From assembly GCA_028826165.1 (NCBI GenBank), contig JAPDFW010000033.1:496001-560000 (forward strand): a stretch of DNA of 64,000 nucleotides. Reading direction: 5' to 3'. The translations under genes were made by a program, and so were the position numbers. Positions 1 through 62,185 of this stretch are shown here, piece after piece. Source of the DNA: Anaeramoeba ignava BMAN. Its lineage: Eukaryota; Protista; Anaeramoebae. Each line of letters starts with the position of its first letter. Within the stretch, counting starts at the first letter, position 1. The notes under the pieces were generated by a model. The model was not told where the DNA came from. It searched no databases and was given only the letters and a program-made list of their open reading frames with translations.

Positions 1-3000
1 ATTTAATTTTATATTTAATTCTATATTTAATTTTATAAATAATTTTATAAATAATTTTATAAATAATTTTATAAATAATTTTATATTTAATTTTATATTT
101 AATTTTATAAATAATTTTATAAATAATTTTATAAATAATTTTATAAATAATTTTATAAATAATTTAATAAATAATTTTATAAATAATTTTATAAATAATT
201 TAATAAATAATTTAATAATTAATTTTATAATTAATTTTATAAATAATTTTATAAATAATTTTATTAATAATTTAATAAATAATTTAATAAATAATTTTAT
301 AAATAATTTTACAAATAATTTTATAAATAATTTTATAATTAATTTTTATATATAATTTTATATTTAATTTTATATTTAATTTTATAATTAATTTAATAAA
401 TAATTTAATAAATAATTTTATATTTAATTTTATAAATAATTTTATATTTAATTTTATAAATAATTTTATATTTAATTTTATAAATAATTTTATATATAAT
501 TTTATAAATAATTTTATATTTAATTTTATAAATAATTTTATAAATAATTTTATAAATAATTTTATATTTAATTTAATAAATAATTTAATAAATAATTTAA
601 TAAATAATTTTATAATTAATTTTATATTAAATTTTATAAATAATTTTATAAATAATTTTATAAATAATTTTATAAATAATTTAATAAATAATTTTATAAA
701 TAATTTAATAAATAATTTAATAAATAATTTAATAAATAATTTTATAAATAATTTTATAAATAATTTTTATAATTAATTTTATAAATAATTTTATAAAATA
801 ATTTTATAAATAATTTTTATAATTAATTTTATATTTAATTTTATATATAATTTTATAAATAATTTTATAAATAATTTTATAAATAAATTTATAAATAATT
901 TTATATATAATTTTATAAATAATTTTATAAATAATTTTATAAATAATTTTATAAATAATTTTATAATAAATTTTATAAAAATAATTTTTATATATAAATT
1001 TTATATATAATTTTATATATATAATTTTATAAATAATTTTATAAATAATTTTATAAATAATTTTATAAATAATTTTATATTTAATTTTATATTTAATTTT
1101 ATATTAAATTTTATAATTAATTTTATATTAAATTTTATAAATAATTTTATTTATAATTTTATAAATAATTTTATAAATAATTTTATATTTAATTTTATAA
1201 ATAATTTTATAAATAATTTTATAAATAATTTTATATTTAATTTCATAATTAATTTTTATAAATAATTTTATAATTAATTTTATAAATAATTTTATATTAA
1301 ATTTTATAAATAAATTTTATAAATAATTTAATAAATAATTTAATAAATAATTTTATAAATAATTTTATAAATAATTTTATAATTAATTTAATAAATAATT
1401 TTATATTAAATTTTATATTTAATTTTATATTTAATTTTATAAATAATTTTATAAATAAATTAATAAATAATTTTATAAATAATTTTATAAATAATTTTAT
1501 AAATAAATTAATAAATAATTTTATAAATAATTTTATAAATAATTTTATAAATAATTTTATAATTAATTTTATTAATAATTTTATAATTAATTTTATAAAT
1601 AATTTTATAATTAATTTTATAAATAATTTTATATTTAATTTTATAAATAATTTTATAATTAATTTTAATTTTATAAATAATTTTATAAATAATTTTATAA
1701 ATAATTTTATAAATAATTTTATAAATAATTTTATAATTAATTTTATAATTAATTTTATAAATAATTTTATAAATAATTTTATATATAATTTTATAAATAA
1801 TTTTAATAAATAATTTTATAAATAATTTTATAAATAATTTTATATTTAATTTTATATTAAATTTTATAATTAATTTTATATTAAATTTTATAAATAATTT
1901 TATAAATAATTTTATATATAATTTTATAATTAATTTTATAAATAATTTTATAAATAATTTTATAATTAATTTTATAATTAATTTTATAATTAATTTTATA
2001 TTTAATTTTATAATTAATTTTATAAATAATTTCATAAATAATTTCATAAATAATTTTATAAATAATTTTATAAAATAATTTCATAAATAATTTTATAAAT
2101 AATTTTATAATTAATTTTATAATTAATTTTATAATTAATTTTATATTTAATTTTATAATTAATTTTATAAATAATTTCATAAATAATTTCATAAATAATT
2201 TTATAAATAATTTTATAAATAATTTCATAAATAATTTTATAAATAATTTTATAAATAATTTTATAAATAATTTTATAAATAATTTTATATATAATTTTAT
2301 ATATAATTTTATATATAATTTTATATATAATTTTATATATAATTTTATAAATAATTTTATAAATAATTTAATAAATAATTTAATAAATAATTTTATAAAT
2401 AATTTTATAAATAATTATATATTTAATTTTATAATTTAATTTTATATTTAATTTTTATATTTAATTTTATATTTAATTTTTATATTTAATTTTATAAATA
2501 ATTTTATAAATAATTTTATATTTAATTTTATAATTAATTTTATAAATAATTTAATAAATAATTTAATAAATAATTTTATAAATAATTTTATAAATAATTT
2601 TATAAATAATTTTATAAATAATTTTATATTTAATTTTATAATTAATTTTATAAATAATTTTATAAATAATTTTATAAATAATTTTATAAATAATTTTATA
2701 AATAATTTTATAAATAATTTTATAAATAATTTTATAAAATATTTTTATAAATAATTTTATAAATAATTTTATAAATAATTTTATAAATAATTTTATAAAT
2801 AATTTTATAAATAATTTTATAAATAATTTTATAAATATTTTTATAAATAATTTTATAAATAATTTTATAAAATAATTTTATAAATAATTTTATAAATAAT
2901 TTTATAAATAATTTTATATATAATTTTATAAATAATTTTATATAATAATTTTATATATAATTTTATAAATAATTTTATATATAATTTTATAAATAATTTT

Positions 3001-4275
3001 ATAAATAATTTTATATATAATTTTATAAATAATTTTTATAAATAATTTAATAAATAATTTTATAAATAATTTTATAAATAATTTTATAAATAATTTTATA
3101 TATAATTTTTATAAATAATTTTATAAATAATTTTATTAATAATTTTATAAATAATTTTATATTTAATTTTATAATTAATTTTATAAATAATTTTATATAT
3201 AATTTTATAAATAATTTTTATAAATAATTTTATAATTAATTTTATAATTAATTTTATAAATAATTTAATAAATAATTTTATAAATAATTTTATAAATAAT
3301 TTTATAATTAATTTTATAAATAGTTTTATATTTAATTTTATAAATAATTTTATATTTAATTTTATATTAATTTTATAATTAATTTTATAATTAATTTTAT
3401 AAATAATTTTATAAATAATTTTATATATAATTTTATAAATAATTTTATAATTAATTTTATAATTAATTTTATAAATAATTTTATAAATAATTTTATATAT
3501 AATTTTATAAATAATTTTATAATTAATTTTTATATATAATTTTATAAATAATTTAATAAATAATTTTATAAATAATTTTATAAATAATTTTATAATTAAT
3601 TTTTTTATATTTAATTTTATAAATAATTTTTATAATTAATTTTATAAATAATTTTATAAATAATTATATATTTAATTTTATAATTAATTTTATATTTAAT
3701 TTTATATTTAATTTTATAAATAATTTTATGTAAATAATTTAATAAATAATTTTATAAATAATTTTATAAATAATTTTATAAATAATTTTATAATTAATTT
3801 TATATTTAATTTTATATTTAATTTTTATAAATAATTTTATATTTAATTTTATAAATAATTTTATAAATAATTTTATAAATAATTTTATCAATAATTTAAT
3901 AAATAATTTTATAAATAATTTTATAAATAATTTAATAAATAATTTTATAAATAATTTTATAAATAATTTTATAAATAATTTTATATTTAATTTTATATTT
4001 AATTTATAAATAATTTTATAAATAATTTTATAAATAATTTTATAAATAATTTTATAATTAATTTTATAAATAATTTTATAATTAATTTTATAAATAATTT
4101 TATAAATAATTTAATAAATAATTTTATATTTAATTTTATATTTAATTTTATAAATAATTTTATAAATAATTTTATAATTAATTTTATAAATAATTTTATA
4201 AATAATTTAATAAATAATTTGATAATTAATTTTATATTTAATTTTCATAAATAAATTGGATTCTCTTAAACATAC
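1..4275 (-). repeat. 12-bp satellite (TTTATAAATAAT)n, probably the >4.2 kb intron of the upstream minus-strand gene; runs off the window edge
   Basis: Degenerate tandem TTTATAAATAAT/TTTATATTTAAT/TTTATAATTAAT units. A minus-strand GTATGT donor at 4275 follows the coding exon. No acceptor lies within the window. Confidence 0.8.
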
Positions 4276-4669
4276 ACCAAGCATAAGCATATTTAGCTTT
4301 CATAAAATTTTGAGTTTCAGGGATCAACCAAAACAAACCTTCAAATTTATTAAAACAATCTTTACAAAAATTTTTAGCAATATCTAACGCTTTTTTAAAA
4401 TATTTTAAAGCTTCAGTTGGTAAATTACTTTCATTTCCTAAAACAATTAATGCTTCAACAGATTCTGGTTCAAATTTAAGTAAATCTTTAGCTAAATTTA
4501 TTCTTGTAATTTCATTCTTTTCAGTTTTTATTTGATTTTTTATTTGTTCACATTTTATTTTCTTGAGTGTTTCTGGATTAAGTAATTGAGTTATTAAATT
4601 AAATCCTTTGGATTTTTTATTCCAATATAATTTTTGTTTTTGCTCTTTTTTTTCTTTTTGAGTTTTCAT
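4276..4669 (-). CDS. Exon 1 of a TPR/ST7-like helical repeat protein; gene continues beyond the window start
   Basis: RINLAKDLLKFEPESVEALIVLG...FEGLFWLIPETQNFMKAKYAYAW resembles the GxFWxxxETRPYMRA motif of ST7-like/bacterial TPR proteins. TTTCATTTT motifs lie upstream and a GTATGT donor at 4275. Confidence 0.6.
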
Positions 4670-4813
4670 TTAAAAAAAATTGAAAAAAAAAAAATGAAAA
4701 AAAAAAAATGAGAAAAAAAACAAAAATTTAAAAAAAGATTTTAATTAAGAATTTATTGTTTTTTTTTTTAAATTGTTTTTTTGTAAAAGAAAAAGTGAGA
4801 TTGAAATGGAAAA

Positions 4814-7703
4814 TTATTGATCGAATTCAATTAAATTTCTTTTTCTAATTGATTGTGATTTAATTTCTCTAATAAAATAAATCACAATCAAAGAAATTAA
4901 GAGTATTGAATAAACTACCAACAAAATAAACATTTCTAATACTGGACTTGAACCACCAATTCTAAAAACAGCAATTCCCCAAACCAAAGATAATGAAGTA
5001 GCACAAATTTGCAATAAAACTAATATCATTGAAAAAACATAGTTTCTTAAGAAAATAACTGCATAAATCATTGCAATAATTAAAGTTCCTGTTTTTCCAA
5101 TAAACATCAAAAATGCACTAAAAACTGGATATAAATTCCAACTTAAAACTCCAACTTGTCCTGGATTAACATCAATATCCAAATCCAATGTTTGCTTTCC
5201 AAGAAATGTTTCTGCATATATAATGTAATCCAAATAATACACTGAGAGAATTTGAATCAATCTTAATTTGTTTTGTTTTGCTTTTTCTGAGTTTTCTGCA
5301 ACTTTTGGGATTCTTCCAAGTTTTGTTATATATTTTTTGAATTGAATATTAATCAGAATTGCTCTTGGATTGCAATTTTGAAGAATAAACATTAACCAGC
5401 ATAATCCATCAATTCCAATTCTTTTATCATGTTTTATTATTCCATAAATAATCACTCCAAAAAGAAGTGAATAAAATCCAAATGCAAAAATATTGAATCC
5501 AAACATGAAATAGAAAGTGTTGACATCTTCGGTTAATAAAAACGAAATCATCAACACATGGATAACCAAAACAATGGTTTGTTCTTTTTTTTGTTGATGA
5601 TTATTTTGTTGTTGATGATGTTCATCTTCTTCTCTTTCTTCATTTTTGTTTAATATTAAATATATAATAAAAGATAATCCAACTAATCCAATTTTTTGGT
5701 AAATGGAAGGCAATAAAGGGAAATTGTTGTTAATAAACCAAATGACAAGACCTATTGCTTCAATTTTCATGATATTTTGTTTTTCATTTTCAAAAAAAAG
5801 AAGAATAGCTGTGATTCCGAAATGAGTGGCGATGTATATATAGTTTGTATACATAAAATATTTTTTAAATCTCCACCAAACACTTAGCAAAGGCCATAAA
5901 AGCCAACCGATTGTGAATATTTGCATCAAAAAATCCTTGAAATTTAATCGCAAAAAAATGAACAGGATAGCAATTATCAAAATACTGAGGACAACAAATT
6001 CAAACAAATAAAAAGGAATAGCTGGGAAATATAAGATAGTGCGATATGAAGTAGCAACTTCCAACAGCATTTCAACAGAGGATGATTTCAAAAATTCATC
6101 TAATTCATCTTGATTTGAATGGGGATAAGGAAAAGATGTTTCAATATCTTTTTCATAATATTCTGAAAGTTTTTTGAGTTGGATAATATTTCTCATTAAT
6201 TGAACACGATATTCTTCATTTGCATTTCTTGAAGCAAAGGAATTTGCAATAACACCAAATGAAAAAAATGGAATATCAACTGATTTGAAGAAAGATGTCA
6301 AAGTAGGTGTCACATCAACATCCATTATTTGAGTCCAATCTTGGTGTTCAAAATCAGGATGATAGAACATGAAACATCCAATATTTTTTGTTGGGAGTGT
6401 TTCTATTTCTCCATGAAAACGAGTGCTACTTTCTCCATGATCAGAAGATAGAATGAGTAAATAATCAGGATTATCATGAATAAAATTAACAAGAATATCT
6501 TGTTTGAAAAGTTTGATCAACGAATCATCGAAAAAATTGACTGTTTCTTCATCTGAAAAATGTGATGCATGATCAAAAACTCCTGAATGAATTATCAAAC
6601 TTTGATTTTTGGATCGCAGATCTTGTAAAAGGCTTTTCAGTTTTTCTGGATCATGAACATCTGGATAAACATAAGGATAGCAATCATCATTTGTAATTAG
6701 TCTCATTTCATCAAACCAAGGCATCACTTTATCTTTTCCTCCTAATAATTCGATTGGTGACCATTCAGGTCCAATATATCTTATTTTGAATTCTGGTTTT
6801 TCATATTCATTTATATTTGCATTTGGATTGCTACATCCTTTAGAAGCTCTATTAATTGATGCAATGAGATTATCTCCTTTGATTTCACTTCCGAAAACGT
6901 TTGCTGGAGGCATTCCTTTTATAATTTTAAATAAATATTTAAATCATAAATAAATATTAAAATCAATATTTAAATCATAAATAAATATTAAATCATAAAT
7001 AAATATTTAAATAAATATTTAAATCATAAATATTAAATCACAAATCAATATTTAAATATTAAAATAAATATTTAATTTTAAATCAATATTAAAATAAATA
7101 TTTAAATCAATATTTAAAATCAATATTAAAATAAATATTTAATTAAATATTTAATCACAAATCAATATTAAATAAATATTAAATCACAAATCAATATTTA
7201 AATAAATATTAAATCAATATTAAAATAAATATTTAATTAAATATTAAATATTAAATATTAAATATTTAAATAAATGGGGAATGTAAATGTAAATAAAATT
7301 AAAATGGAAATAATTTGTAAATAAAATTGAAATTACCAGTCCACCAACATGTATAAACAGCATGAGAATAACGATTGCCAGAAAGCGAAACAGTGAAAAT
7401 AATTGAATGATCTTCATATGTAGGAAGAGCTTTCTCAAATCTTTTTAAAGGATAAGAATCAGTAATAAACCAAATAAATTTATCAAATTGAGGAGGAAGT
7501 GGTTCAGAACATGCAAAATGTGTTGGATTACAAACACAAAAATCATTAATTTCATTTGTTGGTGGAACTCCTCGAGTCATAAAAACACTAAATATTTGCC
7601 AACATCGAATTATTATAATCATATTCAATATAAAAATAAAAAACAAAAACAAAAATCGTTTTTGTTTTGGTAATTGTTTATAAGTTTGTAAAAGTTTTTT
7701 CAT
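4814..7703 (-). CDS. GPI ethanolamine-phosphate transferase-like protein (alkaline-phosphatase superfamily lumenal domain plus many TM helices); 2 exons, intron 6916-7336
   Basis: N-terminal TM, FITDS, spliced TG|GMPP, DHASH and SSDHG motifs, QxxDVTPT, then about a dozen hydrophobic segments. GTAATT...AAAG splice joins the two ORFs in frame. Confidence 0.7.
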
Positions 7704-7849
7704 TTTAATTTAATTTTCGATGACTAATCAATTTTGTTTTGATTTATTTTCTTATTTTTGTTATTTCAATTTTAATCTTTTGATTATTTAATTTAATAAA
7801 ATTGTTTCCAAGAAATTTGATTTAAAAAAAATGAAAATTAATTTTTTTC

Positions 7850-10540
7850 TTTTTTAAATATAAAAATTATTATTTTAAATTTAAATAATTTATCTAAATA
7901 ATCTAAATAAATAAAATATTTAAAAATAATAAATCAAAATAATTTAAATTAATTAATATTTTATTTAAGAAAATATCAAAATATTTCCTCAATTTTTTAA
8001 AAAGAATTAAATATAAAAATTATTATTTTAAATTTAAATAATTTATCTAAATAATCTAAATAAATAAAATATTTAAAAATAATAAATCAAAATAATTTAA
8101 TTTAATTAATATTTTATTTAAGAAAATATCAAAATATTTCCTCAATTTTTAAAAAGAATGAAATATAAAAATTATTATTTTAAATTTAAATAATTTATCT
8201 AAATAGTCTAAATAAATAAAATATTTAAAAATAATAAATCAAAATAATTTAAATTAATTAATATTTTATTTTAAGAAAATATCAAAATATTTCCTCAATT
8301 TTTAAAAAGAATTAAATATAAAAATTATTATTTTAAATTTAAATTATTTATCTAAATAATCTAAATAAACAAAATATTTAAAAATAATAAATCAAAATAA
8401 TTTAATTTAATTAATATTTTATTTAAGAAAATATCAAAATATTTCCTCAATTTTTAAAAAGAATGAAATATAAAAATTGTTATTTTAAATTTAAATTATT
8501 TATATAAATAATCTAAATAAACAAAATATTTAAAAATATTAAATTAAAATAATTTAATTTAATTAATATTTTATTTAAGAAAATATCAAAATATTTCCTC
8601 AATTTTTAAAAAGAATTAAATATAAAAATTATTATTTTAAATTTAAATAATTTATCTAAATAATCTAAATAAATAAAATATTTAAAAATAATAAATCAAA
8701 ATAATTTAATTTAATTAATATTTTATTTAAGAAAATATCAAAATATTTCCTCAATTTTTAAAAAGAATGAAATATAAAAATTATTATTTTAAATTTAAAT
8801 AATTTATATAAATAATCTAAATAAACAAAATATTTAAAAATAATAAATTAAAATAATTTAATTTAATTAATATTTTATTTAAGAAATTATCAAAATATTT
8901 CCTTAATTTTTAAAAAGAATGAAATATAAAAATATTATTTTAAATTTAAATAATTTATATAAATAATCTAAATAAACAAAATATTTAAAAATAATAAATC
9001 AAAATAATTTAATTTAATTAATATTTTATTTAAGAAATTATCAAAATATTTCCTTAATTTTTAAAAAGAATTAAATATAAAAATATTATTTTAAATTTAA
9101 ATAATTTATATAAATAATCTAAATAAATAAAATATTTAAAAATAATAAATCAAAATAATTTAATTTAATTAATATTTTATTCAAGAAAATATCAAAATAT
9201 TTCCTCAATTTTTAAAAAGAATAAAATATAAAAATTATTAATTTAAATTTAAATAATTTATATAAATAATCTAAATAAATAAAATATTTAAAAATATTAA
9301 ATCAAAATAATTTAATTTAATTAATATTTTATTTAAGAAAATATCAAAATATTTCCTCAATTTTTTAAAAAGAATTAAATATAAAAATTATTATTTTAAA
9401 TTTAAATAATTTATATAAATAATCTAAATAAATAAAATATTTAAAAATAATAAATTAAAATAATTTAATTTAATTAATATTTTATTTAAGAAAATATCAA
9501 AAATATTTCCTTAATTTTTAAAAAGAATGAAATATAAAAATATTATTTTAAATTTAAATAATTTATCTAAATAATCTAAATAAATAAAATATTTAAAAAT
9601 ATTAAATCAAAATAATTTAATTTAATTAATATTTTATTTAAGAAAATATCAAAATATTTCCTCCAATTTTTTAAAAGAATTAAATATAAAAATTATTATT
9701 TTAAATTTAAATAATTTATATAAATAATCTAAATAAATAAAATATTTAAAAATAATAAATTAAAATAATTTTAAATTAATTAATATTTTATTTAAGAAAT
9801 TATCAAAATATTTCCTCAATTTTTAAAAAGAATGAAATATAAAAATTGTTATTTTAAATTTAAATAATTTATATAAATAATCTAAATAAACAAAATATTT
9901 AAAAATAATAAATTAAAATAATTTAATTTAATTAATATTTTATTTAAGAAAATATCAAAATATTTCCCCCTCCATTTTTAAAAAGAATGAAATATAAAAA
10001 TTATTATTTTAAATTTAAATAATTTATCTAAATAATCTAAATAAATAAAATATTTAAAAATAATAAATCAAAATAATTTAATTTAATTAATATTTTATTT
10101 AAGAAATTATCAAAATATTTCCTCAATTTTAAAAAGAATGAAATATAAAAATTGTTATTTTAAATTTAAATAATTTATATAAATAATCTAAATAAATAAA
10201 ATATTTAAAAATAATAAATCAAAATAATTTAATTTAATTAATATTTTATTTAAGAAAATATCAAAATATTTCTTCAATTTTTAAAAAGAATTAAATATAA
10301 AAATTATTATTTTAAATTTAAATAATTTATCTAAATAATCTAAATAAATAAAATATTTAAAAATAATAAATCAAAATAATTTAATTTAATTAATATTTTA
10401 TTCAAGAAAATATCAAAATATTTCCTCAATTTTTTAAAAAGAATTAAATATAAAAATTATTATTTTAAATTTAAATAATTTATCTAAATAATCTAAATAA
10501 ATAAAATATTTAAAAATAATAAATTAAAATAATTTAATTT
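7850..10540. repeat. Intergenic tandem array of a ~153-bp unit, about 17-18 copies
   Basis: Marker ATATTTCCTCAAT recurs at about 7981, 8134, 8287, 8439 and onward with near-identical units. Lies between divergently transcribed genes. Confidence 0.92.
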
Positions 10541-13621: not shown

Positions 13622-13717
13622 AAAAGAAAATGGAATAAATTTATTTTGATTTTTGATTTTTGATTTTTAATTTTTTCATTTTTTAATTTTTCATTTTTCA
13701 TTTTTTCATTTTTGAAA

Positions 13718-16197
13718 ATGTTAAATCCAATTGATTTCATTAAAAAACCAAAAAAACCAACATTTCCAAAAGAAATTCAAACAACTGATTGGGAAACTGA
13801 ATTTGTTACTGAGATTGATACTGATACAAATCGAAAACTTATCCAAAAAGAAGAAAATGAAAAGAAAATTGTTGATGAAACAGAAACAGAATCAGATAAA
13901 AATGACACAAATTCAGAAATTATTCTTGAAGAGAAAGACAATCAAGATCAAGACGAAATAATCAAGCGAAAAGATAATCAAGACAAGAAAAAAAAACACA
14001 TGTTTTATGAGATTGCGATTGTGATGAAAGACCCAGAAATTGAAGATGGAAAATGTGGGAAAAAAATAACGCCCAAAGAAATCAATAAAATCCAAGTTGA
14101 GCAAGCAAAGATCCTTGACAAAATCCGGGAAAGCGGGCTTGAGATTGAGGAGCAAGACGTAGACAAGAAACCGTTACATTTCTATTTGGTAGGGGTGAGT
14201 CTAAGAATGCTTGAGAAATGGGGAGAGGAAATGAGAACAAAAGTGAGATTGATCCAAAAAGATCTTAAACAAATTGAACATTACAGTGAGTTTAGAATTG
14301 AAGACAAAAGCCAGTATGCAGTGAGTCAGGATTTCCCCGATTGTGTGTTTCCTTCTGCGGCTCGACAGAGTCTTGTGACCACAATTATCCAGGAGAAAAG
14401 AGGCAGAGGTGGATGCAATATCAATATTCCAAAATCACTTCATAAGAATTATATGAGCGGATATTTTGGATTGCATAATACGAAAGAGAGAACAGATCTT
14501 TACGCGAGCTGGACAAAGCGACCCAGCGAGCTTTTCCAGTTCAAACAACCCGAAAACAAGATCCGCGATTATTTTGGCGAGGAAATCTCTTATTATTTTG
14601 CGTTTCTTGGATTTTATTCAAAATGGTTGATTTTTCCTTCGGTTTTGGGGTTGGTTTTCACAATCGCAAAATACACCAACGAGAAATTCAAAAAAAGCTA
14701 CGGATATGTGAGTCTTGCCTATTGTTTATTCAATGCGTTATGGGTGACTTTTTTCATTGAGTTTTGGAAGCGAAGAATAATGACACTTGCTTTTCGATGG
14801 GATCTTCTTGATTTGAATACAGTTGATGAGACACCACGCCCGCAGTTCAAAGGCAAGACGCGCAAATCTCCGATAACAGGATCGATTGAGAGATATTATC
14901 CTGAGTGGAAGCGTAAGATAAAATACCTTTTCACATACTCCATTGTTCTTATTATGATGGCAGCTGCTGCTGCATGTTCTATTGGAATCAATTGGAAAAA
15001 ACTAAAAGGTGAAAAAAATCTGACTATGGGTTACAAAATAGGCACTGGTGTAGGCACTGGTGCGTCCATTTTTATTCTTGATTATTTCTACCGCAAGATT
15101 GCTTTCTATCTCAGCTCCTGGGAAAACCACAAAACAGAGGAAGCCTTCCAAAATGCAATGATCATCAAATTATTTCCTTTCCAATTCGTCAATTCGTTTT
15201 CTTCCTTGTTTGTGATTGCCTTTGTTTCTCGTCTTCCGGATTTTCTTGATACTCAACTCGCTAGTTTGCTTCTTACTCGTCTCGCTATTGGCAATTTTCA
15301 AGAGCTTGTTGTTCCTTTTTTGAAGGGCAAATTTCGTAATTGTTGTTCCACTTTTTCTAGAAAATCAGAAAAAAAGATGAATCCAATTGTTAATCAAAGC
15401 AATTTGCCTCAATATGATAACACGATTGATGACTATTCTGAAATGATGCTTCAACTTGGTTATATCTCCTTGTTTTCAGTCTCTATCCCTGCTGTTTCAT
15501 TTTTAGCATATTTGAATAATTTAATTGAAATAAAAGTGGATTCTGCAAAATTGAGAACAATGCAAAGACCTTTACCAAGAATTCGTATTGGAATTGGGAA
15601 TTGGAGTTATATTTTAAATGTGATATCAGTTCTTGTTGTTATGATTAATACAGGTAATTAACAAATTAAATTATAAAAATTCAATTATAAAATTCAATTA
15701 TAAAATTAAAATAAAATTCAATTATAAAATTAAAATTAAATTATAAAATTCATTTATAAAATTAAATTCAATTCATTTATAAAATTAAAATTAAATTCAT
15801 TTATTAAATTCATTTATAAAATTAAAATTCATTTATAAAATTCAATTAAAAATTTTTTATCCGATTTTAATTTTTTTATCCGATTTTAATTTTTTTAGCT
15901 TTAATTGCAATCACTTATTCAGATTCTTTAAAAGATCTTTCTGGTTTTGATACTACTAATAATCGTCTTTGGTGGTTAATTGGATTAGAACATGCAATTT
16001 TCTTAATAAAATATATTTGTCATATGATTATTCCTGATACAACAACAGAAGTTAGTGATGCTATTAAACAAGAACAATTTAAAAGAGAAAAAGCTGCTTT
16101 ACTTTATGGAAAAGGTATTTTTGAAGAAGATTTTAATGAAACTGAATCTGAAAATGAAGATTTTAATGAAACAAATGATCCAGAAATAAAAATTTAA
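13718..16197 (+). CDS. Anoctamin / TMEM16 family protein; 2 exons, intron 15654-15898
   Basis: IRDYFGEEISYYFAFLGFY, EFWKRR, ENHKT, FVNSF, DDYSEMMLQLGY, NNLIEIKVD, GIGNW. Final exon has LEHAIF...IPD. Confidence 0.93.
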
Positions 16198-16435
16198 ATT
16201 TTTAATTGAAATTTTTCATTTGAAATTTTTTGAATTTATATTTGAATTTGAATTTTTAATTGAAATTTATAATTTTATGAGTCACAAAAACCAACTCATA
16301 ATTCCAACTAATTCTTTCTTTTTTTTTAAAAATAAAATTCTAATAAAAAAAAGATTTTTTTCATTTCAAAAAAAAACTGTCAAAATAAATTAAATCAAAA
16401 TAAATTTAAATCAAAATTAAATCAAAATAAATTAA

Positions 16436-17992
16436 ATGGAAACAATCAAAAATTCTTGTGGAAGAATTCTTCCAAAATACATTGAAGGATATGGAGAAGT
16501 TAAACCTTTTATTGGAGCTTTTGAAACAATACCTGATGAAGAAAAAGAAATACAAGTTAAATGTGGATATGGAAAACCAGGAGAAAATAAATTTGTAGGA
16601 ACAATAAAAGAAGCATTATTGAAAAGTGGAATTAAGAACGGAATGACAATATCATTTCATCATCATTTAAGAGAGGGAGACGAGGTTGTAAACATGGCAA
16701 TTACTGCTATAAGAGAGCTTGGAATAAAAGACTTGAAGATTGCACCTTCAGCTCTTTTTGAGACACATAAAATGATCCTTGAAAGCTTGAAGGATGGGAC
16801 AATCAAATATATTGAAGGGTCAATGAACGGTGCAATTGGGCGCGCTACATCAGAGGGTAAACTTTCAGGAGTAGCTGTTCTACGCTCTCACGGAGGAAGA
16901 GTGCGCTCCATACGACAAGGAGACTTGAAGATTGATATTGCAATCATCGCTGCTCCTACAGCAGATATATACGGAAATGCAAATGGATTATACGGCAAAA
17001 ATGCATGCGGTCCTCTTGCTTACTCCCATGCAGACTCGCTTTATGCAAAGAAGGTCATTATTGTTACTGATAATCTTGTCAAATATCCTGCAATCCCAGT
17101 TTCAATTTCTCAAATTAATGTTGATTTTGTTGTTGTTGTTGATTCGATTGGTGATCATAATAAAATCGTTTCTGGGACTACTTCGATCCAATCAAATCCA
17201 ATATCAGAAAAGATCGCAAAATTCTCAACTGATATAATCGAGCATTCTGGTTATTTCAAGGATGGATTTTCAATACAAGCTGGGGCAGGTGGAATTTCTC
17301 TTTCTGTTGTCAAAACTGTTGGTGAATTGATGGAAAAGAAAGGAATCAAAGCTGCCTGGGCAAACGGTGGCACAACAGCTATTCTGGTTGATCTATTTAA
17401 GCGAGGATTGATCGAGAAGCTTTCTACTTGTCAAGCTTTTGATCTCGTCTCGGTTCAATCTTTGAAAGAGGATCCCATGCACTTAGAAACAAATATTGAC
17501 TTCTATGCAAACCCCTTCAATAAAGGATGCTTGTGTAATCTTCTGGATGTTGTTATTCTTGGCGCAACTGAGGTTGATGTGAATTATAATGTGAACGTGA
17601 ATACTCATTCTGATGGATATTTACTTCATGGAATTGGTGGTCATCAAGATACAGCTGCTTGTGCAAAGCTAACCATTATCACAGTCCCCATCGCCAGAAA
17701 AACAAATCCCATCATCATAGATGATGTAACCACTATTACAACTCCTGGTGAATGCATTGATGTTGTTGTTACTGAAGTAGGTGTTGCTATTAATCCAAAA
17801 AGAAAAGATTTGATTGAGAATTTATCCAAAACTGATATTCCTCTTTTTACTATTGAGCAATTAAGAGATAAAGCCAAGGAGTTAGCTGGAAGAGGTTATG
17901 TTAAACCAAAAACAACTGATAGAGTTATTGGTGTTATTGAATGGAGGGATGGAACTGTTATTGATGTTGTTCATCAAGTTGATTTGAACTGA
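16436..17992 (+). CDS. citF: Bacterial-type citrate lyase alpha chain (citrate CoA-transferase, family II CoA-transferase); intronless
   Basis: 518 aa with CitF hallmarks: GMTISFHHHLREGD, RSHGGRVR, G..GKNACGPLAY, QAGAGG, LGATEVDVNYNVNV, GGHQDTA, TPGECIDVVVTE, EWRDGTVIDVV. Confidence 0.93.
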   Translation: METIKNSCGRILPKYIEGYGEVKPFIGAFETIPDEEKEIQVKCGYGKPGENKFVGTIKEALLKSGIKNGMTISFHHHLREGDEVVNMAITAIRELGIKDLKIAPSALFETHKMILESLKDGTIKYIEGSMNGAIGRATSEGKLSGVAVLRSHGGRVRSIRQGDLKIDIAIIAAPTADIYGNANGLYGKNACGPLAYSHADSLYAKKVIIVTDNLVKYPAIPVSISQINVDFVVVVDSIGDHNKIVSGTTSIQSNPISEKIAKFSTDIIEHSGYFKDGFSIQAGAGGISLSVVKTVGELMEKKGIKAAWANGGTTAILVDLFKRGLIEKLSTCQAFDLVSVQSLKEDPMHLETNIDFYANPFNKGCLCNLLDVVILGATEVDVNYNVNVNTHSDGYLLHGIGGHQDTAACAKLTIITVPIARKTNPIIIDDVTTITTPGECIDVVVTEVGVAINPKRKDLIENLSKTDIPLFTIEQLRDKAKELAGRGYVKPKTTDRVIGVIEWRDGTVIDVVHQVDLN

Positions 17993-18133: not shown

Positions 18134-19619
18134 TTAAATGAAATAAGTTTCAAGTTCATCAACTTTCCAATTATTATAAGAACCAGCTAAATAATTTCTA
18201 GCTTCTTCTGTTCCTTGTTTAATTCGATTAGGTAAGTTGTAATTATTACCTAAATTTGTATAACCAGATTTTAACCTTGAATTCACTTGGAAATCATTTC
18301 CATGTCCTCCAAAATGTGGACCATAACTTGAATAAGCATACCAAAGAGCAAATTCTTCTTTTCCTTTTTGAATTGTGAATTTTTGGTTTTCTATTATTCT
18401 TATCATTTCTTAATGAAAAAATAAATGCATTTGGATCAATAATGTATCCATAATAATTTTTTTGATCTTCTTCTCTCCATTTTGATTTATCAGTTGTCCA
18501 TCCAACTTGAGTATAACCTCCAAAAATAAAATTATCTTTTGTTTTGATAATAATTAATGTTTTTCCTTTATTATCACAAATATCATGCCATTTTCCACAA
18601 TTAAATCCATCTTTTTTTGTTGAAAATCCTTTTTTCATTTTAGAAAAGAATTCATTATCATTTATCCATTCTTGTAATTTCTGAACATATTCAATATCTT
18701 GAATAATTTCTGAATCAAATCTCATTTTTCTCTTGAAAATTAATGAATTTTGATTTCCATTTTCTTTTTGAATAAATTGATTTAATTTTTTATGATTTTT
18801 TTCATTTTGAAGTTTTTGGAATTCAATTAATTTTTCTGAAACTTGATTTGAAATTAAATCTTCTTTTAAAGTATCTTCAAGTTCTTGTTCTGAAAAATCA
18901 ATAAATCTGATTTTATGAATAATATTTGAAATTTGATTTTGTAATTTTTCTTTTTCTTTTTTATTCAATTCTTTTTCTTGATTAATATTTGATTTATGTT
19001 TTCCCCATTTTATTATTGATTGAAAGATTTCAAATTCATTGATTGAAATTAAATCATTTGATAAAATAAAATTTAAATGATTTTCTTCAAGTTCAAGAAA
19101 AAATGAAGTTTTGATAAATTCTTGAAAATTTTCAGAAATAAATTGATAAGAAGAATCAAATAATTGATTAAAGTTCATTGATTCAGATAATTTAAGAACA
19201 TCAACAATAGTTTCAATTTGTAAATTATTTTCGATAAATTTTGAAGTAACATTAATTAATTCATCAATTAAATATTTTGATGAAAAAATTAAAATTTCTA
19301 TTGCATTTTCTAAATTAATTTCAATTTTTCCTGAATAAAGATAATTCAAAATTGAAGATAGAATTGAACTTGAAACATCTTTTAGAATTAATTTATTTTC
19401 TTGATATTCTTTCATTTTAGAATTGAAAAGAGATTTAAAATATTGACTTCTTGAAGAAAGAATTGATTTATGAGTTTTAAATGAAGTTTGATTTTGTTCA
19501 CAAATTATTTCAAAATCAAAATAACTTTCATTTTCTTTTTGATTTTGATTTTGATTTTGATTTTGAAATAAATTTTTTAAATCATTTGAAAGTTTTTCTA
19601 AATTTGAATAATTTTCCAT
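18134..19619 (-). CDS. BTB/POZ-BACK-TLDc domain protein with a one-base frameshift near 18385
   Basis: FKTHKSILSSRSQYF (BTB), BACK (EFEIFQSIIKW), TLDc (KKDGF..WHDICDNKGKT, IFGGYT, YGPHFGG). The C-terminus continues in the overlapping 18134-18406 ORF. Confidence 0.85.
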
Positions 19620-39908: not shown

Positions 39909-42900
39909 ATGATCAAGAAGTGTATCAAAAAAAAAATTTAATAATTAAACCTTAAAGAAAATTTTTTTTTAAAATAAAATTAAACCAAAGAAAACAAAAT
40001 TAATCTTAATCGAATAAAGTTCAACTTGAAAAAATTTTTTGAATTGATGAAAAAAAAAAATCCACAAATTTGATTTTTACATAAAATAATTAATTAATTA
40101 AAAAAAAAAAAGCAAGGAAATGATTTTAATTTAATGATTTAATTAATAATTTAATTAAATAATTTAATTTAATATTTTAATTAATAATTTATTTAATAAT
40201 TTATTTAATAATTTAATTGAATGATCTAATTAGTAATTTATTGAATAATTTAATTTAATAATTTAATTAATAATTTATTGAATAATTTATTTAATAATTT
40301 GATAATTTAATTAATAATTTAATTGAATAATTTAATTAAATAATCTATTGAATAAATTAATTAATAATTTATTTAATAATTTAATTTAATAATTTAATAA
40401 ATTAATTAATAATTTATTTAATTTAATTAATAATTTATTTAATAATTTAATTAATTTAATAAATAAATTAACATAAATAAATTAACATAAGCAAATTAAC
40501 ATAAATAAATTAACATAAATAATTTAATTGAATAATTTAATTAATAATTTAATTTAATAATTTAATTGAATAATTTAATTGAATAATTTAATTAAATAAT
40601 TTAAATGAATAATTTATTTAATAATTTAATTTAATAATCTAATTAATTTATTTAATAATTTAATTGAATAATTTAATTAATAATTTAATTAATAATTTAA
40701 TTGAATAATTTATTTAATAATTTTATTGAATAATTTAATTAATAATTTAATTGAATAATTTATTTGAATAATTTAATTTAATAATTTAATTTATAATTTG
40801 ATGAATAATTTATTTAATAATTTAATTAAATAATTTATTTAATAATTTAATAATTTGATTTAATAATTTGATTTAATAATTTAATTAATAATTTAATTTA
40901 ATAATTTAATTAATAATTTAATTGAATAATCTATTTAATAATTTAATTGATAATTTAATTGAATAATTTAATTGAATAATTTAATTGAATAATTTAATTG
41001 ATAATTTAATTGAATAATTTATTTAATAATTTATTTGATAATTTAATTTAATAATTTAATTAATTTATTTGATAATTTAATTTAATAATTTAATTAATTT
41101 AATTGAATAATTTAATTTAATAATTTAATTTAATAATTTATTGAATAATTTAATTAAATAATTTAATTAAATTATTTAATTGAATAATTTATTTAATAAT
41201 TTAATAATTTAATTGAATAATTTTAATTAATAATTTAATTTAATAATTTAATTAATAATTTAATTTAATAATTTAATAATTTAATTTAATAATTTATTTA
41301 ATAATTTATTTAATAATTAATAATTTATTTAATGATTTAATAATTTAATTAATAATTAATTTTAATTTAATTTAATAATTTATTTAATAATTTTATTTAA
41401 TAATTGATTTAATAATTTAATGAATAATTTATTTAAATAATTTTAATTTTTAATAATTTAATTAATAATTTAATTTAATTTAATTTAATTAATTTAATTA
41501 AATAATTTAATTTAATAATTTAATTTAATTTAATAATTTATTTAATAATTTTAATTTAATTATTTAATTTAATTGAATAATTTAATTGAATAATTTAATT
41601 GAATAATTTAATTGAATAATTTAATTGAATAATTTAATTGAATAATTTAATTAATTTAATAATTTGATTTAATAATTTAATTAAATAATCTATTTAATAA
41701 TCTAATTGAATAAATTAATTAATAATTTAATTAAATAATTTAATTTAATAATTTATTTAATAATTTTATTTTAACTAATTTAATAATCTAATTTAATAAA
41801 TTTATTTAATAATTTAATTAATAATTTAATTATTAATTTAATTAATAATTTGATTATTTAATGATCTAATTAATAATTTATTTAATAATTTAAATTATTA
41901 ATCTAATTTAATTAATAATTTAATTGAATGATCTAATTAATAATTTATTTAATTTAATTTAATAATTTAATTAAATAATTTAATTGAATAATTTAATTGA
42001 ATAATTTATTTAATAATTTAATAATCTAATTAATTTATTTAATAATTTAATTTAATAATTTAATTGAATTATTTAATTAATAATTTAATTAATAATTTAA
42101 TTAATAATTTATTTAATAATTTATTTAATAATTTATTTAATAATTTATTGAATAATTTAATTGATAATTTATTGAATAATTTAAATGAATAATTTAATTG
42201 ATATAATTTAATTGATAATTTTTATTAATAATTTAATGAATATTTTAATTAAATAATTTAATTGAATAATTTAATAATTTAATTTAATAATTTAATGAAT
42301 AATTTAATAATTTAATGAATAATTTGATTTAATAATTTGATTTAAATAATTTAATTAAATAATTTAATTGAATATTTTATTTAATAATTTAATTAATAAT
42401 TTAATTAATTATTAATTTGATAATTTAATTGAATAATTTTAATTTAATTTAATTTAATTATTTTATTAATTATTTAATTTAATAATTTAATTGATAATTT
42501 AAATTAATAATTTAATTAATAATTTAAATTAATAATTTAATTGATAATTTAAATTAATAATTTAATTAATAATTTAATAATTTATTTGAATAATTTATTT
42601 AATTTAATTTAATTTAATAATTTAATTAATAATTTAATTGAATAATCTAATTGGTAATTTATTTAATAATTTATTTAATATTTTAATTTAATAATTTGAT
42701 TAATAATTTAATAATTTAATTAATAATTTATTTAATAATTTAATGAATAATTTAATTTAATAATTTAATTAAATAATATAATTGAATAATTTAATTAAAT
42801 AATTTAATTGAATAATTTAATTGAATAATATTTATTTGTTATTAATAAATAAAATAGTTTTTGAATTAAATTACCTTTTTACTACATTAATATTAATATT

Positions 42901-57833: not shown

Positions 57834-60800
57834 TTATTTATCTTCTTTTGGTTCTTTTTCATCTTTTTCTTGTTCTTGATTTTCATCTCCTTCATCATAA
57901 TTACTTGAATCATTAACAAAATCTAATAAAAAATCAAAATTAAATCAAAATTAAATTATAATTATAAAAATTAAAATAATTATTTTACTTGGTAATTGCA
58001 TATCTTTTGACCATGAATTTAAATTATCCCGAAGTAATCTTAAAACTAAACTTGCATCATGATAACTTTTATCAGATAAAGAATCAATTTTGTCAATTGC
58101 TTCTTCAAATGTTTTTTTTGCAAGAATATAAGCTTGTTGGAAATCATTTAAATTTTCATAATAAAGAACTGAAAAATTTAAAAAAAGTCCTAATCTTAAA
58201 GAATTTGTAATTTGAAGATGTTGATCCGCAATTTTGGATCCTTCTTGATAACAAAAAAGACTTTTTTGAACCATTTCATCTCTTTCTTTTCCAACAAGAA
58301 ATTCTGCTGAATATCGACAATAATCTCCTTTCCTTTTAAATTTAAATTTAATTTTTAAAAAAAAAAAACGGAAATTAGGGAAAATTTTTTTTTTTTTTGC
58401 TTTTTTAATTTTTAAATCAAAATTTACATTTTGTGAAAAAATACTTTACTTTCTGGATCTTTTAAATCCAAAAAATGTTTATCATCTACAAAGCCAATAA
58501 TTTCAAAACAAACTTCTCTTAATTCTTTTTCAATTTTCGTTCTTATTTCTTCTATTCTTTGAGAAAGTTCTTGATTTCCTTGAGTTGTTTCTCTGTGTTC
58601 AAAAAGGGTAAAAACTCTCCAAGAATTTCTACCAGTAGAAACCAAATTTTTATAAGCAACTGATAAAAGGTTTCTTTCTTCTATTGTTAATTCAGTTGTT
58701 CCAAGAACAATTTTTTTCATTGTTTGTCTCATTTCTTATAATTTAAATTAAATTTTGGAATTGATTTTATAAATAATTTTATAATTTAATAAATAATTTT
58801 ATATTTAATTTTATAAATAATTTTATAATTAATTTTATATATAATTTTATAAATAATTTTATAATTAATTTTATAAATAATTTTATAAATAATTTTATAA
58901 ATAATTTTATAAATAATTTTATAAATAATTTTATAATTAATTTTATAATTAATTTTATAAATAATTTTATATTTAATTTTATAAATAATTTTATAAATAA
59001 TTTTATAAATAATTTTATAATTAATTTTATAAATAATTTTATAAATAATTTTATAATTAATTTTATAAATAATTTTATAAATAATTTTATAATTAATTTT
59101 ATATTTAATTTTATATTTAATTTTTATAAATAAATTTATATAATTTTATAATTAATTTTATAAATAATTTTAATAAATAATTTTATATTTAATTTATATT
59201 AATTTTATATTTAATTTTATAAATAATTTTATAAATAATTTTATAAATAATTTTATAATTAATTTTATAAATAATTTTATAAATAATTTTATAAATAATT
59301 TTATAAATAATTTTATATTTAATTTTATTAATAATTTTATAATTAATTTTATTAATAATTTTATTAATAATTTTATAAATAATTTTATAAATAATTTAAT
59401 AATTAATTTTATAATTAATTTTATAATTAATTTTATAAATAATTTTTATAAATAATTTTTATAATTAATTTTATAAATTAATTTTATAAATAATTTTATA
59501 AATAATTTTATATTTAATTTTATAAATAATTTTATAAATAATTTTATAAATAATTTTATAATTAATTTTATAAATAATTTTATATTTAATTTTATAATTA
59601 ATTTTATATTTAATTTTATAAATAAATTTATAAATAATTTTATATTTAATTTTATTAATAATTTTATAAATAATTTTATATTTAATTTTAAAATAATTTT
59701 TTATAAATAATTTTATAAATAATTTTTATAAATAATTTTATAATTAATTTTATAATTAATTTTATTAATAATTTTATATTTAATTTTATATTTAATTTTA
59801 TAATTAATTTTTATATTTAATTTAATAAATAATTTTATAAATAATTTTATAATTAATTTAATAAATAATTTTATAAATAATTTTATAAATAATTTTATAA
59901 ATAATTTTATAATTAATTTAATAAATAATTTTATAAATAATTTTATAATTAATTTAATAAATAATTTTTATAATTAATTTTATAAATAATTTTATAATTA
60001 ATTTTATAAATAATTTTATAATTAATTTTTAAAATAATTTTATATTTAATTTTATAAATAATTTTATAAATTAATTTTATAAATAATTTTATAAATAATT
60101 TTATAAATAATTTTATAAATAATTTAATAAATAATTTTATAAATAATTTTATAAATAATTTTATAAATAATTTTATAAATAATTTTATAAATAATTTTAT
60201 AAATAATTTTATAAAATAATTTTATAAAATAATTTAATAAATAATTTTATAAATAATTTTATAAAATAATTTTATAATTAATTTTATATTTAATTTTATA
60301 AATAATTTTATAAATAATTTTTATAAATAATTTTATAATTAATTTTTATAAATAATTTTATAATTTCAATTTTATATTTAATTTTATATTTAATTTTATA
60401 AATAATTTTATATTTAATTTTATATTTAATTTTATAATTAATTTTATAATTAATTTTTATATTTAATTTTATAAATAATTTTATAATTAATTTTATATAT
60501 AATTTTTATAATTAATTTTATAAATAATTTTATAAATAATTTTATAAATAATTTAATAAATAATTTTATAAATAATTTTATATTTAATTTTATATTTAAT
60601 TTTTAGAATTGATTTTATAAATAATTTTATAAATAATTTTATATTTAATTTATAAATAATTTTATAAATAATTTTATAAATAATTTTATAAATAATTTTA
60701 TAAATAATTTTATAAATAATTTTATAAATAATTTTATAAATAATTTTATAAATAATTTTATAAATAATTTTATAATTAATTTTATAAATAATTTTATAAT

Positions 60801-61578
60801 TAATTTTATAATTTTTTATAAATATTTTTAAATAAAATAATTTTATAATAATTTTATATATAATTTTTATATTAATTTTATATTTTAATTTTATAAAAAT
60901 TTTATATTAATTTTTATATTTAATTTTAATTAGTTTTATAATTTTTATAAATAATTTTATAATTAATTTTATAAATAATTTTATATTTAATTTTTATAAA
61001 TAATTTAATAAATAATTTTATAATTAATTTAATAAATAATTTTATAAATAATTTTATATTTAATTTTATAAATAATTTTATAAATAATTTTATATTTAAT
61101 TTTATAAATAATTTTATAAATAATTTTTATAAATAATTTTATATTTAATTTTATATTTAATTTTATAAATAATTTTATAAATAATTTTATAATTATTTTA
61201 ATAATTAATTTTATAATTAATTTAATAATTAATTTTATAATTAATTTAATAATTAATTTTATAAATAATTTAATAAAATAATTTAATAATTAATTTATAA
61301 ATAATTTTATATTTAATTTTATAATTAATTTTATAATTAATTTTATATTTAATTTTATAAATAATTTTATAATTAATTTTATAATTGATTTTATATTTAA
61401 TTTTATAAATAATTTTATAAATAATTTTATAAATAATTTTATAAATAATTTTATAAATAATTTTATAATTAATTTTATAAATAATTTTATAATTGCGATT
61501 AAAATTACCTTCATATCTTCTTGATTGTTCACACATTTTTGCAACAAAAACCAAAAATTTTCTTTCTTCTAAATCCAT
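57834..61578 (-). CDS. 14-3-3 protein; 4 exons, large intron 58735-61508
   Basis: AKMCEQSRRYE|EM, EERNLLSVAYKN, KM|KGDYCRY, RLGLFLNFSVLYYE, LLRDNLNSW, acidic tail. Confidence 0.93.
58735..61508 (-). repeat. Intronic 12-bp satellite (TTTATAAATAAT)n, same family as 1-4275
   Basis: Same unit and same variants as the array at the window start. Confidence 0.9.
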
Positions 61579-61739
61579 TATTTCTTATTTATTTTATTTT
61601 CTATTAATTTATTTGTTTTAAAAAAAGAAAAAAATTGAAAAAAAAAAACAAAAAAAACAAAAAAAACAAAAATATTTTTTTTCTCCTTTAAATTTTTTTT
61701 TCTCCTTTTTTTTCTTTTTAATTTTTAAATAAAGAATTA

Positions 61740-62185
61740 TTTAGATCAAAAAATAATCAATTTGATCAAACAACTAAGATTAAGTAAATTAATAAAAGAA
61801 ACAAAAATATTCCAAATGGGAAAGAATTTATTTAAATGAAAATGAAAATGAAAATGAAAAAGATTTTATTATTGAAAGAAAAGAAAAACAATATAAATTT
61901 CCCAAATTAATATTAATAATGAGAAGTGAATTATATCGAGGAATGTTTTTATCTGTTACAAATGATACTTCAAATAAAGTTACAGATTATAGTGAATTAA
62001 GTAATAAATCATTTCAAATATTAGAATATTGGATTTATTCAAATCAAATTAAAGATGAAATTCAAATTACACAAGAAATTATTGATGAAATTAAAACTGG
62101 AATTGATTATTTTCAATTAAATCAAACAAATCCAAATTTATTTGATTTATTAATTAAAAAATTTAATAATCAAAATCTAAATTAA
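61740..62185 (+). pseudogene. Internally deleted, degenerate RCC1-BTB paralog fragment
   Basis: 61822-62155 is nearly identical to 63685-64000. It is preceded by a degraded RCC1 segment (AAATATTCCAAA, cf. 62943). No intact 5' part. Confidence 0.7.

Follow-up and report, generated by a model that had tools for sequence, protein, structure and literature searches.

Classical citrate lyase (CitDEF, EC 4.1.3.6), encoded by citCDEFXG in Klebsiella pneumoniae and Escherichia coli, is composed of alpha (CitF), beta (CitE) and gamma (CitD) subunits, with its acyl group carried on 2'-(5''-phosphoribosyl)-3'-dephospho-CoA bound to CitD. In work on the isolated subunits by Dimroth and Eggerer, free acetyl-CoA and citrate reportedly exchanged CoA through the action of the alpha subunit, whereas free citryl-CoA is said to have been split by the beta subunit. 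Citryl-CoA lyase, a member of the citrate synthase family, works on free citryl-CoA. Eukaryotes are, to our knowledge, normally taken to cleave citrate by ATP-citrate lyase (ACLY) only. This report concerns a CitF gene (positions 16436..17992, plus strand) in the genome of the anaerobic protist Anaeramoeba ignava, within a 64-kb stretch, termed here the window, that spans positions 496001-560000 of contig 24 (775 kb) in an assembly of 42.8 Mb and 147 contigs. The gene is almost certainly a real, functional host gene of lateral origin, and it is considered below together with a separately encoded CitD-CitE fusion, with which it may form an ATP-independent route of citrate cleavage.

ACLY and the CLYBL-type homologs of CitE resemble such a route in converting citrate, or citramalyl-/malyl-CoA, into a C2 unit and an oxo-acid; ACLY, however, uses ATP and yields acetyl-CoA. 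As far as we know, CLYBL occurs without CitF. CitE homologs of Mycobacterium tuberculosis are likewise reported without CitF (PMC6232273), and a fused CitD-CitE has already been described in Ignavibacterium album (IALB_1146/1147; PMC3362086). Within the searchable literature, no paper ties CitF or citrate lyase alpha to Anaeramoeba, to other anaerobic protists or to any eukaryote, and there is no account of the carrier-serine loss, the mosaic origin or the operon-order remnant on contig 83 that are set out below. What is new is thus the context of the gene and its mechanistic implication, the annotation itself being already in GenBank.

CitF in the genome of Anaeramoeba

The CitF coding sequence comprises 518 codons in a single open frame with neither stop codon nor frameshift. 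It is intronless and matches both the Pfam family (PF04223; E 5.5e-157, 524 bits, profile positions 2-466 of 466) and the NCBIfam citF equivalog TIGR01584 (579.8 bits, above the cut-off of 501.45 bits), in agreement with the initial annotation, made from the sequence alone, which had described a full-length, uninterrupted citrate lyase alpha subunit / citrate CoA-transferase. The CitF structures of Salmonella (1xr4) and Streptococcus (2hj0) align with the protein over its whole length (E ~1e-135), and 90 of the 92 highly conserved family columns, i.e. those with an identical residue in at least 97 % of 118 prokaryotic CitF sequences, are intact, the two changes being alanine to serine and phenylalanine to tyrosine. 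As the initial annotation had stated, there is no N-terminal targeting extension; the nearest bacterial homolog is itself longer by 8 residues at the N-terminus. Judged by its sequence, the protein is a CitF of the usual kind, already named correctly in GenBank, and a Protein Atlas look-up returned only 'CitF' and nothing further.

The relationships of the protein are prokaryotic. Among the best 120 of 8000 scored homologs, Anaeramoeba is the only named eukaryote, the other named sources being prokaryotic and many being unnamed; the best prokaryotic match is 64 % identical to the window CitF. Both a quick tree of 121 sequences and a careful tree of 49 sequences (LG+C20 PMSF) place three Anaeramoeba CitFs in a 14-sequence clade with 100/100 support, the other 11 members of which are metagenomic CitFs of a stand-alone ('orphan') type. 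The contigs of six of these 11 were examined, and they carry tightly packed bacterial-type genes (sigma-70/anti-sigma, SufBD, ExbD, FTHFS and GH42) at 53-72 % GC. CitFs of the operon type (Clostridium, Cetobacterium and Geobacter) branch far away in the tree. This nesting in a clade that is otherwise prokaryotic, taken with the host features described below, supports the lateral transfer that had been proposed at the outset; the lateral acquisition of metabolic genes is frequent in Anaeramoeba (PMC11550330). A search for the donor phylum with the citryl-CoA-lyase-like gene next to the closest relative (contig L007) gave only 47 % matches, from mixed phyla. Inside the clade the Anaeramoeba CitFs are monophyletic with weak support (40/34), for which one acquisition predating the divergence of A. 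ignava from Anaeramoeba flamelloides would be the simplest reading. Contigs L008, L074 and L075, all three from this clade, encode formate-tetrahydrofolate ligase directly upstream of their stand-alone CitF.

The setting of the gene is that of the host. The anoctamin gene upstream, which contains an intron, ends with its stop codon at 16197, a distance of 238 nt from the ATG of CitF (239 bp had been claimed), and the stop of a BTB-BACK-TLDc gene lies at 18134, 141 nt past the CitF stop and close to the ~140 bp first given. An upstream motif attributed to the host at ~16355-16366 was also recovered. This element, TTTTTTCATTT, occupies positions 16356..16366 of the plus strand, 70 nt before the CitF ATG, and there are 35 copies of it in the window where 7.5 would be expected, a count reached in 0 of 100 shuffles. 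Two copies precede the anoctamin open reading frame closely (13671 and 13701), another lies just upstream of the BTB gene (minus strand, 19641), and the CitF paralog on contig 143 has one upstream as well; the motif probably serves as a core promoter or initiator element. Codon usage is host-like, as the initial annotation had it, the G+C content at third codon positions (GC3) of the window CitF being 0.243 within a range of 0.09-0.33 for neighbouring host genes.

That gene had also been called solitary, which is true of its local neighbourhood but not of the genome, since two CitF genes, as well as a CitD-CitE fusion elsewhere, came up when the whole assembly was searched for the families in six frames. 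GenBank lists the second CitF, on contig 143, under KAJ5066461.1 ('citrate lyase alpha chain [Anaeramoeba ignava]'); it shares 88 % protein identity and 80 % DNA identity with the window copy. With dS of 1.19, dN of 0.079 and dN/dS of 0.066 between the two copies, the window CitF is under strong purifying selection. Expression, too, is evident for both copies in EukProt transcript data. The top match in a large protein collection was the EukProt A. ignava transcript P0001 (a348187_99.p1), with 94 % identity; its residues 2-181 agree with the contig-143 copy at 33 of 33 informative sites and its residues 234-520 with the window copy at 34 of 34, and no informative site matches neither. P0001 is therefore a clean assembly chimera of the two paralogs, switching between residues 181 and 234, and is unsuitable as a real sequence in trees; however, a chimera built from both copies implies that both are transcribed, and the contig-143 copy has its own full-length transcript as well. 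In A. flamelloides there are at least four CitF paralogs per strain. One of them (L078, contig JANTQA010000044.1) has gained a 293-nt GT-AG intron (6028-6320) after codon 9, and the spliced N-terminus of this type is present in an independently assembled transcript of a paralog; both A. ignava copies, in contrast, are intronless. Since its transfer, CitF has thus been duplicated, has drifted to the composition of the host and has acquired a host promoter-like motif.

The CitD-CitE fusion and the proposed route of citrate cleavage

All three parts of a citrate lyase are encoded in A. ignava, alpha by the two CitF genes and beta and gamma by CitE and CitD-like domains in one fused protein. The search of the assembly identified three CitE-type genes and a single CitD-type domain, the latter in the same open frame as one of the CitE domains. 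This fusion (392 aa; PF06857, PF03328 and PF15617) lies at L006:1501-2679 on contig 56 of the A. ignava assembly (G000), and an A. ignava protein at NCBI matches it with 100 % identity. The initial annotation had envisaged both a dispersed citrate lyase and a possible D-E fusion, and the two were found together, with CitF and the fusion on separate contigs. The nearest prokaryotic homologs of the fusion are all fused themselves and are 43-47 % identical to it. Its CitE motifs are conserved in an alignment with 5vxc and 1sgj, and CLYBL (5vxc) is the top scorer against the CitE domain among the PDB chains matched; the fusion scores 246.6 bits against the citE equivalog, below the cut-off of 443, and 170 bits against the itaconate-degradation lyase RipC. 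It has no N-terminal extension. The other two CitE-like genes do have N-terminal extensions, and one of them is fused to a MaoC/hotdog region. In the part of it that was accessible, the supplement of PMC11550330 lists 'citrate lyase beta subunit' proteins among metabolic proteins of bacterial origin, and no other citrate lyase subunit; the two extended CitE-like genes may correspond to these proteins.

Several genes that would be expected around a citrate lyase or a eukaryotic citrate metabolism were sought in the same way. CitC, CitG and CitX gave no match in the six-frame search of the whole 42.8-Mb assembly, in which an E. coli control matched each family. Neither a citrate-synthase-family domain, and hence neither citrate synthase nor the C-terminal domain of ACLY, nor a gene of the Iso_dh family was found in the assembly. 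The ACLY citrate-binding domain also went unmatched there, although in this case the control gave no signal either.

The carrier motif of the fusion is altered. Among 119 fused CitD-CitE homologs, [RK]SDC is present in 114 and the cysteine in all 119, whereas the motif reads KGDC, within residues 1-10 of the fusion, in both A. ignava and A. flamelloides (P0122). In canonical, separate CitD the motif is LES[SGN]D, with a hydrophobic residue where the fused homologs have their invariant cysteine; the register between the two motifs is ambiguous by one residue, but in either register A. flamelloides has no serine. In the A. flamelloides fusion, the CitD model PF06857 no longer finds a match.

The closest relatives of the Anaeramoeba CitF provide a second line of evidence. 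In the orphan clade, CitF never adjoins citD or citE. In the closest relative (L007, 64 % identical), the next gene is citryl-CoA-lyase-like, of the citrate synthase family, and in Thermoplasmata-type metagenome-assembled genomes (MAGs) two CitF genes enclose one for a citryl-CoA lyase, which at 309.7 bits exceeds the cut-off of 245. An arrangement of CitF, citryl-CoA lyase and CitF without CitD or CitE is seen in L010, L011, L013 and L015 (Thermoplasmata / Methanobacteriota MAGs). That prokaryotes encode CitF without CitD or CitE implies action on free CoA esters, and the archaeal and bacterial pairs of CitF and citryl-CoA lyase suggest an ATP-independent, carrier-free cleavage of citrate. 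These uncultured Thermoplasmata and Methanobacteriota, with L007, are the nearest parallel to the A. ignava system, up to 64 % identical and likewise without the classical partners next to CitF; they differ in that A. ignava has no citrate-synthase-family gene in the search, so that the lyase step would fall to a CitE-type domain, and the function of the prokaryotic pairs is itself putative.

From these observations a route can be proposed in which a cytosolic CitF would act on free CoA esters, converting acetyl-CoA and citrate to acetate and citryl-CoA, and the CitE domain of the separate CitD-CitE fusion would then split citryl-CoA into acetyl-CoA and oxaloacetate. The net reaction, from citrate to acetate and oxaloacetate, would be ATP-independent, with acetyl-CoA recycled. 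The ribosyl-dephospho-CoA prosthetic group would play no part, since the enzymes for its synthesis, attachment and acetylation are missing and the carrier serine is a glycine. The stand-alone nature of the closest CitFs and the loss of the carrier serine both favour a CoA-transferase of free CoA esters that is coupled to the CitE domain. Of the two functions first suggested, a dispersed ATP-independent citrate lyase or a stand-alone acetyl-CoA:citrate CoA-transferase, the evidence thus favours the second, though coupled to CitE; the first stands in so far as the D-E fusion was found. The account that joins CitF to the fusion is, as a whole, regarded as the best explanation, with a probability of roughly 0.55, and for the mechanism and substrate in particular, a citrate CoA-transferase working on free CoA with a CitE lyase, the chances are about even.

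Several observations weigh against this account. With no citrate synthase or Iso_dh family gene in the search of the A. ignava assembly, the cell would depend on prey or medium for its citrate. CitF and CitD-CitE stem from different prokaryotic lineages, and their partnership in Anaeramoeba is assumed. Three prokaryotic fusions also lack the serine. CitX and CitG are missing from the fusion-bearing bacteria as well: among 81 genomes sampled from the Melioribacter phylum, 5 carry the fusion, with an adjacent CitF in each of the five and CitX or CitG in none, so that the missing machinery is an inherited state rather than a loss in the amoeba. Finally, there is a hint from the co-transferred aconitase-like, LeuCD-like and HD genes, described in the next section, that points to a different, uncharacterised pathway. 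The five genomes with the fusion (G001, G005, G030, G042 and G058) are of Bacteroidota/Ignavibacteria type.

If the proposed account is correct, it would add a route from citrate to acetate and oxaloacetate to the fermentative map of an anaerobic protist whose sulfate-reducing symbionts are predicted to be fed by its acetate. In a less probable version, CitF would take CoA from succinyl- or propionyl-CoA instead; CitF and the fusion would then yield acetyl-CoA and make up for the lack of ACLY, and they would at the same time stand for an uncharacterised pathway of prokaryotes with no need of CitG or CitX. Citrate-lyase-like systems without this prosthetic-group machinery exist in bacteria and archaea. 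A. ignava itself, an anaerobic protist in which neither citrate synthase nor ACLY was found, keeps several expressed and constrained copies of the transferase subunit along with a putative lyase partner.

The bacterial cluster and alternative explanations

Fused CitD-CitE proteins form a large prokaryotic family (Ignavibacteria, Melioribacter, Bacteroidota and others), and in bacteria that have one, CitF directly follows the fusion gene. The fusion recurs within a cluster whose order is (aminotransferase), Iso_dh, HD protein, fused aconitase-like, LeuC-like, LeuD-like, CitDE and CitF. Taking the bacterial contig L062 as the reference, homologs of five genes of this cluster are present in A. 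ignava. The HD/HDIG protein (190 aa; L079 on contig 117 of G000, 1495-2067, minus strand) is 58 % identical to its counterpart, and the CitD-CitE fusion 44 %. On contig 83 (L069, which covers 92000-101999), a fused large-plus-small aconitase-like gene (6959-9013; 56 % against L062 3278-5080), a LeuC-like gene (5585-6886; 61 % against L062 5158-6423) and a LeuD-like gene (4757-5476; 62 % against L062 6423-6905) are consecutive on the minus strand, in the bacterial order and separated by A-rich spacers of 72 and 108 nt. From its sequence, this trio resembles part of an operon from a bacterium that has become established in a eukaryotic genome; a multi-gene bacterial module would in that case have moved into a eukaryote with its gene order partly preserved. 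The LeuD-like gene is followed by a gene for a small CoA_binding_2 protein (4085-4522, minus strand). In the L062-type cluster the HD gene sits between Iso_dh and aconitase, and HD genes of similar size and N-terminus adjoin CitF in Thermoplasmata-type MAGs (L013 and L015). The aconitase family has a fourth and divergent gene on contig 1 (L070 3424-5256, minus strand), which encodes 610 aa ending in a low-complexity tail and lies head-to-head with an AMP-binding, acyl-CoA synthetase-like gene (L070 5639-7426, plus strand).

The A. ignava system thus resembles that of Ignavibacteria and Bacteroidota in having the same fused family, in lacking CitX and CitG and in possessing the cluster companions. 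It departs from it in the carrier motif (RSDC in the bacteria, KGDC in Anaeramoeba), in the Iso_dh partner, for which A. ignava yielded no match, and in its CitF. The CitFs that follow a fused CitDE (L061, L063 and an N-terminal fragment in L062) form a separate clade with 99-100 support and are 48 % identical to the Anaeramoeba CitF, so that the system of the amoeba is a mosaic of at least two sources. The most inclusive statement that could be made, namely that Anaeramoeba has a cytosolic, ATP-independent and carrier-free citrate cleavage drawn from at least two sources, one giving the orphan CitF and another the dead-carrier CitD-CitE along with an operon block of HD, aconitase-like and LeuCD-like genes (three of them in order), is judged improbable and is offered only tentatively.

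The cluster also underlies the strongest competitor of the citrate route, in which CitF would serve a different and as yet uncharacterised pathway of bacterial origin as a CoA-transferase for another di- or tricarboxylate, hydroxylated or unsaturated (citramalate, itaconate/mesaconate, homocitrate or methylcitrate), partnered by the aconitase-like, LeuC/LeuD-like and HD proteins and by one of the three CitE-like lyases. This possibility gains from the five cluster homologs and the preserved order on contig 83, from the want of any citrate synthase or isocitrate dehydrogenase family gene that could feed a citrate route, from the fusion's scores under the citE cut-off and against RipC, and from the CitE-MaoC fusion in the genome. 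It is nonetheless rather unlikely, because CitF itself exceeds the citF equivalog cut-off and retains nearly all of the conserved columns, its nearest prokaryotic relatives pair with citryl-CoA-lyase-type genes and so point to citrate, and its lineage is not that of the bacterial cluster. A citramalate lyase in a methylaspartate pathway is not supported, as the search found no methylaspartase.

A classical alpha/beta/gamma citrate lyase, with the acyl group on 2'-(5''-phosphoribosyl)-3'-dephospho-CoA bound to the CitD domain of the fusion, survives less well. Like CitDEF, A. ignava encodes a protein of the same CitF family together with a CitE lyase and a CitD-like domain; its genes, however, are dispersed over three contigs, with gamma and beta fused. 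The replacement of the carrier serine by glycine in both Anaeramoeba species, the failure of the A. flamelloides fusion to score as PF06857, and the absence of CitG, CitX and CitC from six-frame searches with a positive E. coli control leave a classical complex highly unlikely. Inheritance of CitF from an ancient eukaryotic ancestor, without lateral transfer, has nothing in its favour beyond presence in two Anaeramoeba species and is very improbable, given that no other named eukaryote stands among the best 120 of 8000 homologs and that the Anaeramoeba sequences are nested at 100/100 with 11 metagenomic CitFs, the contigs of the six examined being prokaryotic. Lastly, although the cultures are xenic and Anaeramoeba harbours Desulfobacteraceae symbionts (PMC11550330), contamination or a chimeric contig carrying the CitF of a symbiont or of prey has a negligible likelihood in view of the host genes less than 250 nt away on both sides (one with a spliceosomal intron), the AT-rich flanks with the host motif, the GC3 of 0.24, the second copy in another host context, the intron inside the A. 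flamelloides ortholog, the EukProt transcripts and a best prokaryotic match of only 64 % identity.

Flanking genes and composition of the window

The anoctamin gene extends over 13712..16197 on the plus strand, with an exon to 15653, a GT-AG intron at 15654-15898 and a last exon at 15899-16197. When the exons were searched one by one, the first matched the Anoctamin profile at positions 1-402 and the second at 418-460. Short tandem units rich in A/T make up the intron. The spacer that separates the anoctamin stop from the start of CitF (16198..16435) reads as AT-rich and of host type. On the other side, the BTB-BACK-TLDc gene, recognized from its open reading frame and profile matches, occupies 18134..19619 on the minus strand and is convergent with CitF.

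Both A. ignava CitF copies are arranged tail-to-tail with a BTB-BACK-TLDc gene, that of the contig-143 copy lying at L072:3631-5172 (plus strand). A recent segmental duplication of the CitF-BTB block finds no support here, as the flanking BTB proteins are only 24 % identical; the shared neighbour is either a coincidence within a large gene family or the result of a very old block duplication. Elsewhere in the window there are near-pure A/T stretches of 2-4 kb, with 0.2-5 % G+C, at 1-4000, 40001-42000 and 60001-62000.

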